64,000 nucleotides of DNA from Thalia democratica (GCA_965202585.1 OZ241828.1:62806001-62870000); one strand, 5' to 3'; positions 216-47,442 are shown, counted from the stretch's first letter. Made by a program: numbers and translations. The notes: generated by a model from the letters alone, not told the origin.

Positions 216-2901
216 GATAACTTTCCAATGTACATGGAATTCCATTGCGCCTACGATCAGAAACTTGGATCATGGAACGTGGGAAATGTTTGTGAATCGA
301 ACAAGGCATATTTTAATGGCCCATGGACTAATTCTCGCTGCTGTAAAGGAGAAATGTGCAACAATATATCTGTTTCTGACGACAATTTCAAAGAAAAAGC
401 GAAAAAAGCTTACACAAGAATAAATAGTAGAAGATTGGTTTATGACGCTGATATCTATACTTATCACGAGCCGATTAACATGACATTAGTAAGTTTAAAA
501 AAGGTTTTTACTCTTAATAATATCAAAGATTTGTTTAGTTTTTTTATTGAAATTGTTAATTTTAACCTTGTCTTAAACTTTTTAAAAATATTTTCAAAAG
601 TGTAAGTAAAAAAAACCTATTCTTCTAACTAAAAATAGTTTATTTGTTTTTGTATCGGTAAAGATTTTGAAAACTAACTATAGTTACAGCTAGGTTCTAT
701 ATTTGATTGTTTAAGTTTTAATTATTGATTTGTTGTCTAAGAATCTTTGTAACACTTTTTTCTAAATAAGTTATGAATCATACACTTATAAATTGCATCG
801 TTTTGATAATATAAATAAGCAATGGTCAACCTACAAACATAAAATGTTATTTAATGACAATATCTAACACAGGCGTTTGACATTATTGACAATCAAACGT
901 CTTACACGCCTCCACTACCAAGTGTTTTGCCCTTTGCTACTGGGATAAAAAAGAGGGACTAAAAGTCCCAAGAAAAACCCCCAAACAATTCTCAAATAAA
1001 AATAAAAAGCACAGACAACGACGTGCAAATGCGGTAAGATGTATTTAGACGGTACAATGACAATGAGAAATGTTCTAGAAGATTCAGAATGCACTTCGAA
1101 TTGGACTTGTGAGTCTGATGGTCAATGCCTGACAAAGTACAAAGAAGAGGTAGTTGGATATTTATTAGTAACTTAGAATTTTTGCTAACTTACTAAAGTA
1201 TGCTAAATAATAAGAAATGGACCAAATATATTTTTAAGATTTAACAAATGTAAACCTAGTTTTTATAGTAAAGCGTTCAAATTATGTTTTACTGTATTTT
1301 TTGATATGTTCTTTTCTATTGAGTAAGTAAATTAATGCTCTACAAGAACATTTATTGTAGTTATTAATTGTAGTTAACAATTTTTAATATTTTCTTATAT
1401 TAAACTTTTTGTCAGTATAAGTAGAAAAATAAAATTTGTTGTTTGTACTATATCAAAATTATGCAGTAGTTTTAAAATAATTTAACTAATGCTAAATACA
1501 ATTTAAGCAAACTTTAAGCTATAGTAAATGTTTTGGTTTTAGAAACGTGAATAGTAATACGCTTATTTTAAATTATCAAAATGACTTTACAACGATTGTG
1601 CTAGGAAACAAATCTAATTGTCTACATACAGGAAAGCTGTTTGGTGATTAAGTAATCGACAAATAAATTTGCTCTAAGTTAATAGTCCATAAAAAGTTTT
1701 AAGTTTTTTTGAGTTTATTAGAATTACTTTCCGAACAAAATATGATATACTTAAATGACAAATTTTGATTTAAACTGCTCAATAATTCATTCAACATAGG
1801 GGCACGGAATGTACATGCAATTTTCTTGCGAAAAAGAACCTTTGCTGAAATGTCCAACCGACTCAGCTGTTCAGGTCAACTTTCGAGGAGCTGAAGAGGT
1901 TCACTGCTGCAAAGGAGAAATGTGCAATGACGTCAACGTTACTGACGCGAGCTACAAACTGAAAGTGTTGGAGGTGTGCAGCAGATTTGAGGAAAAGGAA
2001 GCTAACGGTCGTGGACTTAATTGCAATGAGGTCAGTCGGTGTTTTTGAGATTTGCTTATTTAAACAAAACAAATTCTTTTTTAATAAGAACACTTTTGTG
2101 TGACTTTGGCTAATTCAGATTTCTACACATGATTTATAGTACAGTAATAAAAATCTGAAGAATTATTGTCATTCGCTCGCAATAGTTAATGTATTTTTGA
2201 TCGAAATAGTTTATGGTTATAGATTTAAGTAAGTACTTTTTGTTAAAATAGTTTATTTAATACACTTGTTAACATTAATTTAATTATAATCCTGTTATTA
2301 TTCAATGTCCACTAGGTTAATTTTTACTTTTGTAGCTGTTTTTGATTATCTTATTTATTATTTTCATTAATTGTTCTAGGTTGAAAACTATCTTGATCAG
2401 AGGATAGAAAATACGGAGTCAAGTTAATTGGATTCTTTTTTAATAGTTTTTACAAATTAAAAATACTGTAAGTTGATGTTTTTCGTTTAGACAATTTTTG
2501 TATAAAAACCGTAAAGCTTTAGCTTTCTTATTAAATTGAATTAGTTTCTTAACCAATTCAAAAAAATTACTATAAAAATTGTTGTTAAATATTACAACTA
2601 ATATAGTTTAGCTAGTTATTGTTTTCACTCTTTAAAACTTCAATAACTTATAATTGGACTTAATTTTATTTAAATTGATGAAAAATTGATGTAAATGAAA
2701 AATACTAAATTGTAGAAACAACCATTATTTGTTTGTATTACTTAAAGTTAACTAATTTAATTTAAAATTTCTCTTAAGAATTGATATTTAAACGTTAATT
2801 TATCTTAAATGTTTTATATTTTAGGCATCAAGTAACTAAGGTGCAGTCATACATTTAAGTATCTGCTTCTACTTCTAGTATTTTATTTGACTTATTTATG
2901 A
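216..2901 (+). CDS. Partial (5' end outside window) gene with tandem activin/TGF-beta type I receptor-like ectodomains and a GPI-signal-like C-terminus; no transmembrane or kinase exons seen
   Basis: Exons 216-488, 1015-1149, 1800-2030 and 2380-~2422 join through phase-0 GT-AG introns. Exons 1015-1149 plus 1800-2030 give TTTCKCGK...SECTSNWTCESDGQCLTKYKEEGHGMYMQFSCEKEPLLKCPTD...VHCCKGEMCN, the 10-Cys order of type I receptor ectodomains (CxC..C..TC..DG.C..C..C..CCxxxxCN). Exon 216-488 is the second half of a paralogous domain (MYMEFHC...CCKGEMCN). The exon after the acceptor at 2824 encodes CSHTFKYLLLLLVFYLTYL-TGA (stop 2899-2901). The last splice junctions are uncertain. Confidence 0.72.
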
Positions 2902-32571: not shown

Positions 32572-32876
32572 TTTGAGGTAGTAGTAACTATTCTGAAGTG
32601 TTTGATAGTATCACAAGAAAATTCACGTATATTGAAACATTGCCAAAATGGGTAAGAACATCAGAACCAACTTCACATGATCATTTCAGACGAGATCTAT
32701 TTATTTCTTCATACCAGACCGTCAGCATTGTTTATAAAATTTATTTCTTTAGAAAAGAAAGCAATAAAGTCCATGTACACAGCTATGACGTCAATAACGG
32801 TCTTTTCAGCTTCAAAGCTGCTATGGAGTTAGAAAAGTTCGAGAAAGTAAGCTACACTAAAATCCCAATGACGTAA
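32572..32876 (+). pseudogene. Kelch-repeat gene, 3' fragment (copy A)
   Basis: Homology to copy B starts abruptly at the GGSSDYCEVFDSITRKFTYI-equivalent sequence and ends KIPMT-TAA. No 5' part is present upstream. Confidence 0.85.
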
Positions 32877-38153: not shown

Positions 38154-39104
38154 ATGGGGTCATATTTTTCAAAACCTGAGAAAAAATCCGGAGAGCAGTT
38201 TCCTGTTCTGTATAGAAGCAGGTATTGTGATCAGGAAAATTTTAAAATTACAGCGTTTAGTAGAGCATGCGACGGAAAAGACGTTTATTTTGATAAACCT
38301 GTCTTGCTGAGTAACTTCGATGCTAAAGAACGTCTACCTAATGTGATGACAAAGTCCAGTGATGCAGTCAGTTACAAATCTAGTACATTGAAAAGAGAAA
38401 TTAGGCTTAAACCGTTTAGAAATTGTAGTAATTTAAAGTTTTTTGGTAAGGGCGGTTACCTTTATTTGTTGAACCAGCATCTTTTATCAAAAAGAGATTA
38501 TTACTCTCGAAGAAGACAAACACACTAATAGATGGAAATCTATTGCTTTATGATAGAAAGAAGGAAGTATACAGCTTGTACAGTTTTCGAAGGCAAAATC
38601 GTTGTGTAAGGAGGTATTAAAACGGTTGTAAGAAAAATTATGACATATAGGGGTTCACATAATTCCGTTGGAAGAAAACTTGTGAGCGAAAGCCCGAATT
38701 CAGTAGAAGCTTATGATCATCATGAAAACAAATGGACCTATTTTCCTAGTATGCTATCACGAAGAACTAACCATTCAGCACTTAGTATCGGCAACAAATT
38801 GTTTATGATTGGAGGTAGTAGTGATTATTGTGAAGTGTTCGACAGTATCACAAGAAAATTCACGTATATTGAAACAATGCCGAAATTGGTGAGAACATCA
38901 GAACATGATCATTTCAGACTAGATCTATTTATTTCTTCATACCAAATCGTCAGAATTGGTTATAAAGTTTATTTCTTTAGAAATGAAAACAGTAAAGTCA
39001 ATGTTCACAGCTATGACGTCAATAACGATCTCTTCAGCTTCGAAGCTTCCATGTAGGTAGAAAAGTTCGAGAAAGTAAGCTACTTTAAAATCCCAATGAC
39101 CTAA
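38154..39104 (+). pseudogene. Intronless kelch-repeat gene, copy B
   Basis: Starts MGSYFSKPEKK and carries kelch motifs (CTVFEGKIVV.GG, VEAYDHHENKW..FPSM, HSALSIGNKLFMIGG). Relative to copy C it has an ~150-nt internal deletion, a frameshift, TCA>TAA in V-S-GG, and TAG where copy A has GAG (~39054). Confidence 0.88.
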
Positions 39105-41294
39105 AGTATGAAGTTTATAGTTATAGTACTTTTATATATTATAAAATTTTGTATGTCAGACTATTTTGTTCTACTTAGTTTTTATAACTTTATATTTTTT
39201 GTTGTAATTTTACCAATTTATGTTGGTTTACAATAAAACGATTTTTGTCGATTGCTTCTTTTATAGTTTCTTAAAATTTAATATCTTTAGATTCTCAATA
39301 AATTTGAAGTTAATACGAACAAAAGTTGTTTACAATTCTTTCAGTTGTTGTATTTTGCAATAGATAAGTCCATTAATAACCATAAAACTAAAGAACATAC
39401 AAAAATAGTTTTTAGAGACAATCAAACTACTAAACACTCGTATATAAAATTAAATAGTTTAAAACAATTTGGTTATGCTCCTGAGCTTCAAAACACAAAA
39501 GTGATTAGTTTGGACAGAAAAGTCTAATATAACTTATTGTAGGATTGTCTTATATTTGTTAAAATTAAAATTGCCTTATTTCTTTCTTGTTTTTTTAATC
39601 AAAGTTTCAGTTTAAACTGTATTGAATATAAAAATAAGTTCTATTAACATAAAATGAAGAAAAAATTAAACAAATACATGATTTCATTTGTCTTTTTATA
39701 AAAGCACGACACGTTCTACAATTTAACTGATTTAATTAATATTAGCAATTAAACATTATTTAAACATAAGATAGTATTGTTTATTGAACGGTAAAAAATA
39801 ACGCTCAAAATGTTTGGTCTAAGGAACCTTTCGGTTATCGAGTTGTACACCACATAATTACAAAATTTCTTACGAGCTATTAGATTCTTTTTTTTTATCA
39901 TTTGAATTTTTTAGGCTTTTGTAATAAAACAATCAGTTAAAAGAAATAAAAGAAAAAAAATTGTTTAGAAGTATATGTACTAAAAAATAGATATAACGTT
40001 CAATCAACTAATAAAAGAAAATACTTTTAAACAATACTTTTAGGCAACCACTTGAATACTTGAATGATAGGTTACAACCTTTTTAAAGAAAGCAAAAATG
40101 TATTATGCTAAAACATTGTTACGTTTATTTTTGTCAGTATATTGTGCTAAAAATGTTATTTTTATTTTATCTAATAATTTCATATGAACAGTAAAAATAA
40201 TTTTATTTTTGTATAGATAAATATACTACCTCATAATTTTTTAATAACTTTAAAGAAGTGAATTCTACTTTAACTGAACTTAAATTTTATAAATTTAGAT
40301 AAAAAGTTAAGTAATGTTGAGTTTATGCTTTTAATATAAAAACAGAAAACAAAAAAATATACAATATTAGCAACAGCAAATTTCCTTCTGTTTCAAATAT
40401 ACTTTTTTATATTTTAAGTACTTGTCTAAGTCTAAAATTGATTTACTACTAGGCAAAAAATATTTATAAACATAAAAAGAAGTTTTTTTTTTCTTTTATT
40501 TTTGACTTTCTCAGAAAAAGAGATAGTGATAATTTTAAAGCGATGCTTAAAAAATATTAATTTAGAATGCTTACTTTCACTAAAGTTAAATATTACAGGT
40601 AAGTAGTATTTTATTTGTATCAATTTTAACTTTTTTCTATAGAAATAAAAACTTTAAATTTACTTGAGTACATTTATATTGAGTGGTCACGTATCTATTG
40701 TTTTAAGTTCTTTTAAACAATTAAAACATTAAACATGTATAAAAGTTTTAAAAATTGAATTTGTGTACTTGGGTTTACTTAATAGAAAATTTTTTAAATT
40801 TTTTTATTGTGTTTAAATTAAACATTTTAAATAATTTAACTAAAACTCTACTACAGTTTAAAATTGAAAATTTGTATTGAAATGTCTTTCTTAATAAAAC
40901 CTGAATATTGATAGTAACTTTACTAGTAACTATAACTTAAATGAACATTCCATAAAATTTTCAAAAAAGCTTGTAATCTAAGTAAAATACTTTTGATAAT
41001 CTGTTATATAACTATCATTTATACTACCTGATTAGAAAGCATATGTTTCAGGCTATATAAAACTTGATTACAAGCATAAATTTTAAAAGTTTTTTAGCAC
41101 AAAATAATAACCTGTTTTTAAAAACTAACTTAAAAAATGTTTTCGATTTCAGCTGAACACATTTAAATCTTAGTATATTTATGCTGTTAAAAAGTTTAAA
41201 ATAGTTGTATTTAAAACTATTTGCTTAAATTTTAATTTATTTTCAGTTGTAGTACTTACTGTTATTGCAAAAATATTGTTGTAAAAATAGAGAA

Positions 41295-42431
41295 ATTAGA
41301 TCTTCTTTCTCAAATCCTGAGAAAAACTTTGGACAGCAATTTCTTATTTCGTATAGGAGCAGATATTGTGAACAGGAAAATTTTGAAATTGCTGCGTTTT
41401 GTAGTGATTGCGATGGTGAAAATATCTATATTGATAAACCCGTCTTTCTGACCAATTTCGATACTAAAGACCATCTAACTAATTTGATGACAAACTGCAG
41501 CCAAAAAATCAGTTGCAAACCTCAAACATTGAAAAAAGAAATAATGCTAAAATCAATTGGTAATAATGGTAATTTAAAGTCTGTCGGTGTTGGTGGTAAC
41601 ATTTATTTGTTGTGTCAGCACCTTTTAGAAAAAATAAACTATAGTACTGGAAGTTATTACAATTTAACTTCTGTAAAAATGTTTCCTCCTGCAACTAAAT
41701 GTTGGAAAAATTTACCGGAAATATCTGATGAAAAAGGAAATTATTCTATATGTTCTTTTTTGCAAAAAATGTGTGTATTTGGAAAACTTTGCATGTTTTA
41801 TGACAAACACACTAATGAATGGAGACATATTGCATTAATGCTTGAAAGTAAAGAAGATACAGCTTGTACAGTTTTCGAAGGTAAAATTATTGTTTCAGGA
41901 GGTTTCAAAACAGTTCGAAGACGGATTACGACATATAGGGCTTTTCATTATTCCGTAGGAATAGACTTTGTAACCGAATGCTCGAATTTAGTAGAAGCTT
42001 ATGATCATCATGAAAACAAATGGACTTCTTTTCCTAGTATGCTATCACGAAGAACTAATCATTTGGCAGTTAGTATCGGTAACAAAATATTTAACTTTAA
42101 CCAAACTTTTAAAAGACGATAAACAGCACTAACAACAAACGTTTGAATACTTGAATTATTATAGATTACAACTTCTTTAAAGAAAGTAAAATTCAATACG
42201 CTGAATGTGTTACAATAGTTACTAGTAGTTTATATTACAATAGATACCATTAACATTTACATTGGAAATACATACAGTTAACATTGGAAATAAAATTTAC
42301 TTTTCAAAAAAGATAACAATAAGGTAAATGTTCACAGCTATGATGTCGAGAACAATATTTTTAGCTTCAAAACTTCGATGAAATCAGTAAAGTTCAAGAA
42401 AGTAAGCTATATTAGAATTTCAATGACCTAA
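41295..42431 (+). pseudogene. Intronless kelch-repeat gene, copy C
   Basis: Long open frame with several kelch repeats. ATT sits at the position of copy B's ATG. Coding sequence after GNKI (~42092-42270) is replaced by non-coding DNA. The 3' end has a 1-nt frameshift and ends ISMT-TAA. Confidence 0.85.
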
Positions 42432-46410: not shown

Positions 46411-47442
46411 ATGACTTTCACTATGTTCACATCAAACATAAAACTGTTAACAACTGTGTTAATGGTCACTGTTATTAACTCGTTTGAACTTCAGCAAGGG
46501 GGTAATGACATTCTGTTGAACAAGTTTGACAATTTGACTCAACTCGAAAGTGTGCATCAAAGTGATAATATCAAGCCGGTTGCTCCTCACAAAACTTATA
46601 GGTTCAAATGTAGGTGAGCTGCAGTTTTTTAAGTTTTTTTTTAAACTAATGAGTTTAATCAAAACATAATGTTGGTTATAAAGTTGTTTCGCTAAAATTT
46701 CAAATAGTTTTTACTGATTGTTTGAAATAATAAATATGTTTTTAAGTAAAGTTTTTTTGTGATTGATACTAAAAACTTTTATTAGCTTTTTATTTGTACT
46801 TAAATGTTTATTATATAACCTACTTGTAGTTAAGTTAAAACAACTGAATTAACACTTCTTTTATTAAAACTTTCTTAAAAATTTGTATTAATATTGAATC
46901 AATGAGTTACAGAAACCTAGAGGTTAGCTTTGTTGAAGTGAAAGATTGTGTTGGAAAATGTTACAACCCGAATACATGCCGTGTGTTCAAGGTAACCTTT
47001 TTTTGATTTCATCAGACGTTTTACTAAAACTCTGCTAACAAATGTTATTTTAGTAATAAGACTTTAAAACAAGTGAATCATAAACTTTTTAAAATTGTTT
47101 TTTACAGCTAAAACCAAAAATAAAATAATTGGTGTTGTATATGGAAAACAATCAAGTTTTTTAATTATAAAAAATGTATATACATAAAGTATATATAGAA
47201 ATCATAATAAAGCTCTAAGTGAGTAAAACCAAGTTGTAAATTAACAAATTTTATAGAAGTTCAAAAACACTCCGATATGGAAGTATGCCACCTTCAAAAC
47301 ACTAGATGGCGGTAAAGAGACGTTTCGCATTCCAGATGCTTGCCACTGCACAGTGACGTCACAACAAAGTGGAAGTTCATACGATGAGTGCGTCAGCAAG
47401 CGGGGAGAAATATTTAAAATGATGATGATTTTTAAATTTTGA
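46411..47442 (+). CDS. Secreted minimal cystine-knot protein (155 aa), family unassigned
   Basis: Exons 46411-46613, 46913-46991 and 47257-47442 join through phase-compatible GT-AG introns with no internal stops. There is an N-terminal hydrophobic signal (KLLTTVLMVTVINS). Cys pattern: FKC-x12-CVGKC-x5-C-x32-CHC, plus one extra Cys. Confidence 0.8.

Follow-up and report, generated by a model that had tools for sequence, protein, structure and literature searches.

IL-17 proteins, as represented by human IL-17A/F and IL-25 structures such as 8dyf, 8ruu and 7uwj, are secreted, ~130-150 residues long and equipped with a signal peptide and an N-terminal extension, and they combine a four-strand, two-hairpin cystine-knot fold with four invariant cysteines (as C..C and CxC), an N-x-P-V/I motif that opens hairpin 2 and an LPVACxCV-type ending. 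An S-P-W or C-P-W motif upstream of the knot is a further IL-17 feature (PMC8353272), and the IL-17s of tunicates and vertebrates are of the two-disulfide T2 type, which lacks the cysteines of the third knot disulfide seen in invertebrate IL-17 (PMC11087794; PMC8353272). In marine invertebrates, IL-17 genes are known to have expanded in tandem (PMC8353272, PMC5457136). Here we describe a three-exon gene in a 64,000-nucleotide stretch of Thalia democratica DNA (GCA_965202585.1 OZ241828.1:62806001-62870000; hereafter the window, meaning the whole stretch that was analysed), which belongs to a family that resembles IL-17 in modelled fold, in cysteine arrangement and, partly in degenerate form, in motifs. 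With a probability of roughly 0.68 for the reading as a whole, we take its product to be a secreted IL-17-type (two-disulfide) cystine-knot protein of about 131 residues after signal-peptide removal, encoded by a young gene that arose by recent duplication within a large and rapidly evolving family, which is found across tunicates and has diverged too far for the Pfam IL17 model to recognise it. An earlier, sequence-only reading had presented the same gene as an orphan minimal cystine-knot protein and a candidate new growth factor or hormone. Its assignment to the secreted cystine-knot cytokine/growth-factor superfamily is supported by the present analysis, and several of its more specific claims are revised below.

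The gene model itself is sound. An unbroken frame opens with the ATG at 46411, runs over three exons and closes with the TGA at 47440-47442, encoding 155 amino acids, with all four splice junctions being GT/AG and intron phases of 2 and 0 preserving the frame, which confirms the intact three-exon open reading frame (ORF) reported before. Exons have a G+C content of 36-41%, introns of 20-21% and the whole window of 24%, a contrast that is as expected for real coding exons in a very A+T-rich genome. The N-terminus carries a hydrophobic core (LLTTVLMVTVI) and a junction between S and F-x-F that recurs among paralogues, such that the signal peptide proposed earlier is borne out, with cleavage likely after Ser24. 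Seven cysteines are present (67, 80, 84, 90, 123, 125 and 139, with spacings of 12, 3, 5, 32, 1 and 13), and the strings VEVKDCVGKC, SFV and GKC that the sequence-only reading had singled out are all found in the protein, as are its cysteine spacings.

The evidence that carries the IL-17-type reading is structural, and as modelled by AlphaFold two relatives with single-exon genes have the IL-17 fold. For the closest single-exon relative (L045:2375-2665:-; pLDDT 92), the top 50 Foldseek matches were all IL-17A/F/IL-25, with TM of 0.64-0.70 by both lengths and rmsd of 1.3-1.9 A over 74-81 residues. Exhaustive alignment of this model to 48,161 representative chains ranked IL-17A (Z 9.7), IL-25 (Z 9.0) and a third IL-17 entry (Z 8.9) ahead of NGF and PTTH (Z 6.1 each), Sclerostin (Z 5.3), Gremlin (Z 5.1), VEGF-C and VEGF-A (both Z 4.1) and PDGF-B (Z 3.8). 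The second model, of an intronless relative (L053:1339-1791; pLDDT 83, core >90, from a 59-row family alignment), matched IL-17A/F in a Foldseek search of the PDB with rmsd of 2.5-3.7 A over 76-90 residues, against ~10 A for neurotrophins, and its top 50 VIA-align matches were likewise all IL-17A/IL-17F/IL-25 (Z 6.3-7.5, model residues 50-134). Searches of Atlas and AlphaFold DB led to the IL-17/NGF/Spaetzle neighbourhood, with Atlas's own model of the family member P0042 being nearest to IL-17C. Language-model feature searches placed IL17 clusters first for L053 (0.89, 181 features) and for P0042 (0.91-0.92); for the L045 domain PDGF clusters came top at 0.80, a level that shuffled proteins also reach. 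A homodimer prediction for the L053 domain scored 0.00, with the monomer fold uncertain in that method, and it speaks neither for nor against dimerisation.

Evaluating the cysteines across the family revealed a common framework. The fullest members have eight, arranged as C0, C1, C2-x3-C3, x5, C4, ~32 residues, C5-x-C6, ~10-13 residues and C7, with C0 lying in the string 'KYC' after a conserved Y-x-L-L-x-K-x-D-x-x-T-Q stretch and with a very basic tail after C7 in many members. Among 68 aligned family sequences C2, C3, C5 and C6 are invariant (68/68), and C1 is found in 67, C0 in 59, C4 in 57 and C7 in about 44. C4 is absent while C1 is kept in eleven members, and in two members the four invariant cysteines are accompanied by C0 and C1 alone. 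The central Gly of the 'CxGxC' pattern in the sequence-only reading is not conserved, relatives having CQRFC, CGMYC, CDQKC or CIGTC at this site. A variant framework is seen in L048 (C8:37.857 Mb) and in P0015, which have CGEC, with two residues between the first two knot cysteines, and are without C7; L048 is also the strongest own-genome profile match (117 bits) and has a weak Pfam IL17 match.

The structural alignment further places this framework on IL-17A position by position. It begins at L045 model residue 2 and IL-17A residue 64 (precursor numbering) and has no large gaps, with the A/S-P-x of the family falling on the S-P-W of IL-17 and C2 falling on IL-17A Cys94 (also in precursor numbering); the family is collinear with IL-17A. 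In the window protein, Cys80/Cys84 and Cys123/Cys125, which correspond to the four cysteines invariant in the family, are in register with IL-17A Cys71/76 and Cys121/123, with a spacing of x3 rather than x4 in the first pair. The distance from the first residue of the upstream motif to the first knot cysteine is 22 residues in both (A58 to Cys80 in the window protein; S49-P-W to Cys71 in IL-17A), and that from the first knot cysteine to the Pro of the N-x-P-V/I motif is 20 residues in the family and in IL-17A alike. The upstream motif is degenerate in the window protein (A-P-H), its relatives having S-P-W, A-R-W, A-P-Y or S-P-F. At the two positions of the third knot disulfide of invertebrate IL-17, the family alignment has no cysteine. 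This register sets Cys67 (C1) at the distal end of the first strand, close to the tip of the hairpin and ~7 residues from the ring, and Cys90 (C4) in the loop that joins the knot to hairpin 2, so that on the modelled fold both are probably accessory and not the first and fourth knot cysteines. Only four of the six cysteines previously assigned to the knot are then probably knot cysteines, and the supposed very short finger 1 is not confirmed, as the fit to IL-17A sets Cys67 near the tip of the first hairpin and not at its base. Cys80-Cys123 and Cys84-Cys125 would form the IL-17-type pair of knot disulfides, leaving Cys67, Cys90 and Cys139 as putative accessory cysteines.

Differences from IL-17 also exist. 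The family has up to four accessory cysteines (C0, C1, C4 and C7) at sites that IL-17 leaves unused, a hairpin 2 shorter by about 7 residues, a helical N-terminal segment that is conserved and, in many members, the very basic C-terminal tail. The N-terminal segment had been described as a ~40-residue pro-like region; because it is conserved family-wide, is confidently folded in the model of a relative (pLDDT 89-95) and contains no dibasic site before Cys67, it is not a propeptide. Within this segment the three chromosome-4 copies of the window-type gene have in common a 9-residue deletion that removes C0, and the string RVLRKYCPS still stands at the deletion point in a contig-41 fragment and in the metagenome homologue P0035, which is the homologue closest to the window clade over exon 1. 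The odd number of cysteines in the window protein is explained by this recent loss of C0 and not by a special C-terminal cysteine. Because C0 is gone, one of Cys67, Cys90 and Cys139 must be unpaired, and it could be free or form an inter-chain bond. Judging from the cysteines that members keep, the accessory pairing C0-C1 and C4-C7 is slightly favoured, since six-cysteine members retain just C0 and C1 beside the knot and since these two flank a predicted hairpin; C1-C4 with C0-C7 is a geometrically possible alternative.

The gene is no orphan. Exon-by-exon searching of its own genome uncovered paralogues that agree with it in exon layout, signal peptide and cysteine pattern, and a family profile matched 44 own-genome loci at E <= 0.001, the window locus included, such that the family comprises at least 44 loci. 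On the same chromosome a copy 96-97% identical to the window gene lies 3 Mb away, at 66.00 Mb, and a 90% identical pseudogene at 58.07 Mb has a changed start codon (ATG>TTG), a changed intron-2 donor (GT>AT) and a premature stop; fragments of window-type genes are found at 58.65 Mb and on contig 41 (C41). Chromosome 6 carries two genes 45% identical to the window gene (79.80 and 79.82 Mb), and a large clade is arranged in arrays on chromosomes 1 and 2. More distant members include a chromosome-6 gene with two exons (41.09 Mb), a chromosome-8 gene (35.55 Mb) and an intronless clade, whose genes encode 151 residues and lie at 53.07-53.08 and 34.70 Mb on chromosome 8 and at 82.00 Mb on chromosome 4. 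Intron positions vary within the family, with two introns in the window and chromosome-6 (79.8 Mb) clades, one in the 41.09 Mb gene and none in the chromosome-8 clade; the second intron of the chromosome 1/2 clade lies about 27 codons later than intron 2 of the window gene. A maximum-likelihood tree pairs the window gene with the 66.00 Mb copy as its sister and sets both inside a clade made up of own-genome genes only, with 100/100 support.

Beyond this genome, 66 matches at E <= 0.001 were obtained when 1.84 billion representative proteins were searched with a profile, and for 25 of these matches E was <= 1e-10. A 54-member family hidden Markov model (HMM) built from the metagenome and other-tunicate proteins of that search, with the genome's own loci left out, scored the window protein at 86.5 bits (E 1.4e-19 for a search space of 1.8 billion). 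Named relatives are Ciona intestinalis XP_002131215 (LOC100176666, 'uncharacterized protein'; UniRef F7A8V3, 'CTCK domain-containing protein') and Clavelina lepadiformis XP_076799799 and XP_076807302, both annotated as uncharacterized. These proteins have the cysteine framework and motifs in common with the window gene and belong to the same family, and they differ from it in falling into the tree's other main branch, that of the 'A-R-W / S-P-W' group, and in keeping the N-terminal cysteine that the window gene has lost. The literature searched contains no mention of the Ciona identifiers (the Clavelina identifiers were not searched), and none of these proteins has a described function. Marine metagenomes, Tara Oceans contigs among them, hold further homologues, one being 83% identical to the intronless L053. 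One metagenome protein, P0068 (483 amino acids), contains a repeated ...DCQASCKSPINCPFEKTLKDNPISS... unit and is matched by the family profile over five stretches; of the domain, its repeats cover just C2-C3-C4 and N-x-P, and the protein may either be genuinely repetitive or result from faulty assembly or gene calling.

The same genome also possesses a canonical IL-17 set. A six-frame search with the Pfam IL17 model (PF06083; gathering score 24 bits) recovered at least 26 passing loci at 35-42 bits, none of which belongs to the window family. This set is a large expansion for a tunicate; Ciona reportedly has three IL-17 genes. Its loci (L067-L088) are found at C5:17.10-17.36, C8:17.58-17.78, C4:48.47, C1:47.19, C6:36.1/37.2 and C2:57.40 Mb, and most stand in tandem arrays and have a CCxCxxC ... 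VPVGCTC pattern. Tandem multigene expansion is a behaviour that the window family and the IL-17s of molluscs and sea urchins have in common. Three SEFIR-domain loci were further detected (C8:47.636, C5:32.080 and C10:13.358 Mb; L077-L079), two in open frames of ~580 residues and the third with stops; the open-frame loci are candidate IL-17 receptors or CIKS adaptor, and as far as sequence can tell, parts for IL-17-type signalling exist in this genome.

Several observations weigh against the IL-17-type reading of the window gene and should be set beside the structural evidence. In Pfam searches the window exons have no PF06083 match, and the best family score, obtained for the relatives L048 and P0067, is 15 bits (E 0.033), below the cut-off; IL17 is the most frequent Pfam family among the homologues (5/67), with all five matches below threshold and a best E of 0.0018. 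Three family profiles and phmmer searched against the PDB returned no IL-17 chain and nothing above threshold, and hhalign of the family against the canonical IL-17 domains of this genome aligned the 14-column LPVACxCV motif alone, with a probability of 13%. The knot spacing is CxxxC in the family and Cx4C or CxCxxC in IL-17. Both modelled relatives are 25-30% identical to the window protein, to which their fold was transferred, and its disulfide map is putative. As for the copy in the window, it differs from its 66.00 Mb sister by seven non-synonymous and four synonymous changes, a dN/dS of ~0.43 on 11 differences, which are too few to test, and the window clade looks weakly constrained, given that ratio, the loss of a family-conserved cysteine and one pseudogene among three near-copies. 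Three sequencing runs at the locus, none of them on record as RNA, cover the introns and diverged copies and contain no splice joints, and the spliced 155-residue protein has no match in a large protein collection, not even itself. By fold, motifs and gene-family behaviour the family is IL-17-like, and by the curated sequence definition it is no demonstrated member. The earlier statement was that the protein fits none of the TGF-beta, DAN, glycoprotein-hormone, NGF/Spaetzle or PDGF patterns cleanly, and sequence searches of Pfam and the PDB indeed place it in no named family. It does fit the IL-17 pattern, which was absent from that list, as judged by the fold, by an S-P-W-type motif that precedes the first knot cysteine by 22 residues, by the N-x-P-V/I motif and by the LPVACxCV-type ending. 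Where a clear orthologue in a named family had been raised as grounds for rejection, what emerged is a structural link to IL-17 and no significant link at the sequence level.

The state of this copy raises the question whether the gene in the window is a duplicate, in an otherwise functional family, that is decaying or has no function, whose ORF is intact by chance because of its youth and which is neither expressed nor secreted as a working ligand. The lack of transcript evidence agrees with such a fate, as do the loss of C0, which leaves seven cysteines, the lesions in the 58.07 Mb copy and the fragmentary state of the 58.65 Mb and contig-41 copies, and the coding sequence (CDS) is no more similar to the 66.00 Mb copy (97.6%) than is intron 1 (98.0%; 94.7% for the other intron). 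We nevertheless consider decay unlikely: two copies retain the full ORF, every splice site and all other family-conserved residues, the comparison with the pseudogene copy gives 94.7% identity for CDS and 85-89% for introns, and odd cysteine counts are also found in other, clearly maintained subclades, such as the intronless clade with seven cysteines and eight intact copies. If the gene is maintained, its fold could still belong to a neighbouring branch, and a ligand of the neurotrophin/Trunk/PTTH/Spaetzle branch, signalling via a receptor tyrosine kinase or Toll-type receptor, is the alternative that the structural searches come nearest to suggesting. These proteins are alike to the family in being cystine-knot cytokines with an elongated two-hairpin monomer; NGF and PTTH are the next best folds after IL-17, neurotrophins lead the Foldseek E-value list for the L053 model, and NGF and Spaetzle clusters come close behind IL17 in the feature searches and the Atlas shape search. 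Trunk has moreover been placed as the closest relative of IL-17, with cross-talk between both pathways (PMC11087794). The IL-17 entries nonetheless stand ~3 Z units above NGF and PTTH and superpose at 1.3-1.9 A against ~10 A for neurotrophins in Foldseek, and the S-P-W and N-x-P-V register agrees with IL-17. Neurotrophins (NGF, NT-3/4) and Spaetzle have a complete three-disulfide knot with a much larger ring and have no S-P-W register, whereas the family is without cysteines at the third-disulfide positions that they keep, and Pfam searches of relatives and homologues gave no NGF, Spaetzle or related match. Membership in this branch is, in our judgement, improbable.

Least probable of all is the proposal closest to the sequence-only reading, namely a complete six-cysteine knot (Cys67-Cys90, Cys80-Cys123 and Cys84-Cys125) with a 12-residue finger 1, making the protein a new growth factor or hormone nearest PDGF/VEGF. 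It draws on the C-x12-CxxxC-x5-C-x32-CxC spacing, which is kept in most of the family, C1 and C4 being as frequent as they are, and on likenesses to PDGF/VEGF (PF00341) in the C-x3-C, C-x5/6-C and C-x32/33-CxC spacings, the C3-C4 and C4-C5 intervals among them, and in the basic C-terminal tail of some members; the weak L045-domain feature search, with its PDGF clusters, also points this way. The resemblance fails the fold test, with VEGF and PDGF at Z 3.8-4.1 against 9.0-9.7 for IL-17 and no PDGF/VEGF entry in the top 50 of either model, and PF00341 was matched in no Pfam search. The family further differs from PDGF/VEGF in lacking the inter-chain cysteine pair and a conserved Gly in CxGxC, and its segment before CxxxC is built as in IL-17 and not as a long VEGF finger 1. 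The position of Cys67 at a hairpin tip, away from the ring, also argues against a third knot bond, and the members that keep C1 without C4 (n=11) or that have only C0 and C1 (n=2) fit accessory disulfides better. An equation of the N-terminal 'KYC' cysteine with VEGF Cys26 had also been entertained and was dropped after the fold searches pointed to IL-17.

If the window protein is of the IL-17 type, it would, once its signal peptide is removed, most likely serve, in dimeric form, as an extracellular signal for defence or epithelial responses, a role proposed by its likeness to IL-17 in other marine invertebrates, and its putative receptor would be of the IL-17R type (FN3 ectodomain plus SEFIR tail) or related to it. 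One could go further and propose that the family is a second, unnamed tunicate lineage of IL-17-fold proteins beside canonical IL-17, with ~44 loci in this genome, in which accessory disulfides among C0, C1, C4 and C7 replace the lost third knot disulfide, the receptor may differ from classical IL-17R, and the C0 deletion of the window clade creates a free cysteine that leads to a covalent dimer or a decoy; we regard this extension as conceivable but doubtful. IL-17 surveys based on Pfam domains would miss the window family, and an approach of that kind is said to have counted three IL-17 genes in Ciona and none in some animals. Should the family members function as ligands, the invertebrates most closely related to vertebrates would have a larger and more varied set of cytokines than listed, and a natural series of IL-17-fold proteins with differing accessory disulfides would be available, which is relevant to the stabilisation of the two-disulfide IL-17 knot of chordates (PMC11087794). 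The window gene alone is of modest importance, because it is a young and possibly weakened copy.

Table 1. Features of the IL-17-like gene in the window, with positions counted from the first letter of the 64,000-nucleotide stretch.
Feature	Position	Strand	Remarks
Exon 1	46411..46613	+	Start codon, signal peptide, N-terminal extension, Cys67 and first two bases of codon 68; GT donor at 46614
Signal peptide, residues 1-24 (likely)	46411-46482	+	Within exon 1
Clade-specific 27-nt (9-residue) deletion site, Gln44/Leu45	46542..46543	+	Removed the N-terminal 'KYC' Cys (C0); from family alignments
A58-P59-H60 motif	46582-46590	+	Counterpart of IL-17 S-P-W; from family alignment and register against IL-17A
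Cys67 codon	46609-46611	+	Exon 1
Intron 1, 299 nt, GT..AG, 20% GC	46614..46912	+	
Exon 2, second strand of hairpin 1, Cys80-x3-Cys84-x5-Cys90	46913..46991	+	From fit to IL-17A and fold matches
Cys80, Cys84 and Cys90 codons	46947-46949, 46959-46961, 46977-46979	+	Exon 2
Intron 2, 265 nt, GT..AG, 21% GC	46992..47256	+	
Exon 3, hairpin 2, Lys-Arg site, short hydrophobic tail, TGA stop	47257..47442	+	Own-genome profile match here, E 3.5e-7
N98-T-P-I101 motif	47266-47277	+	Exon 3
Cys123-His-Cys125	47341-47349	+	Second IL-17-type knot Cys pair (putative); exon 3
Cys139, putative accessory	47389-47391	+	Exon 3

Sequencing runs at the locus showed additional variation. For 'organism B' (run X3), the second organism's contig is without 9 letters, in frame, at window position 46556 (exon 1) and has several exon differences. 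All three runs contain contigs that differ by about 10% and in which intron 2 is replaced, and these contigs probably stem from paralogous copies.

On the mitochondrial contig C1833 (L063:1501-2817), COX1 has AGA/AGG at invariant Gly positions and TGA as Trp. The Gly sites read by AGA/AGG lie in FF-G-HPEVY, DP-x-GGG-DP and IPT-G-IK, which is the ascidian mitochondrial code, and this code together with the named tunicate homologues identifies the host as a tunicate and rules against Hydra, which the low G+C content (24%) had at first suggested. COX1-like stretches with many stops occur on nuclear contigs (C4:56.84-56.94 Mb and C757:31.3-32.1 kb; L064-L066) and are probably insertions of mitochondrial DNA, several of them within 100 kb.

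Elsewhere in the window, two tandem long open frames on the plus strand (38154-39053 and 41253-42119) have in common the string ...GGSSDYCEVFDSITRKFTYIET.PK..., with a related piece upstream at 32577-32873, and by this string look like a kelch/beta-propeller-type repeat gene pair. Open frames at 132-602 and 1800-2045 (+) carry a CCKGEMCN motif of the three-finger / receptor-ectodomain type.

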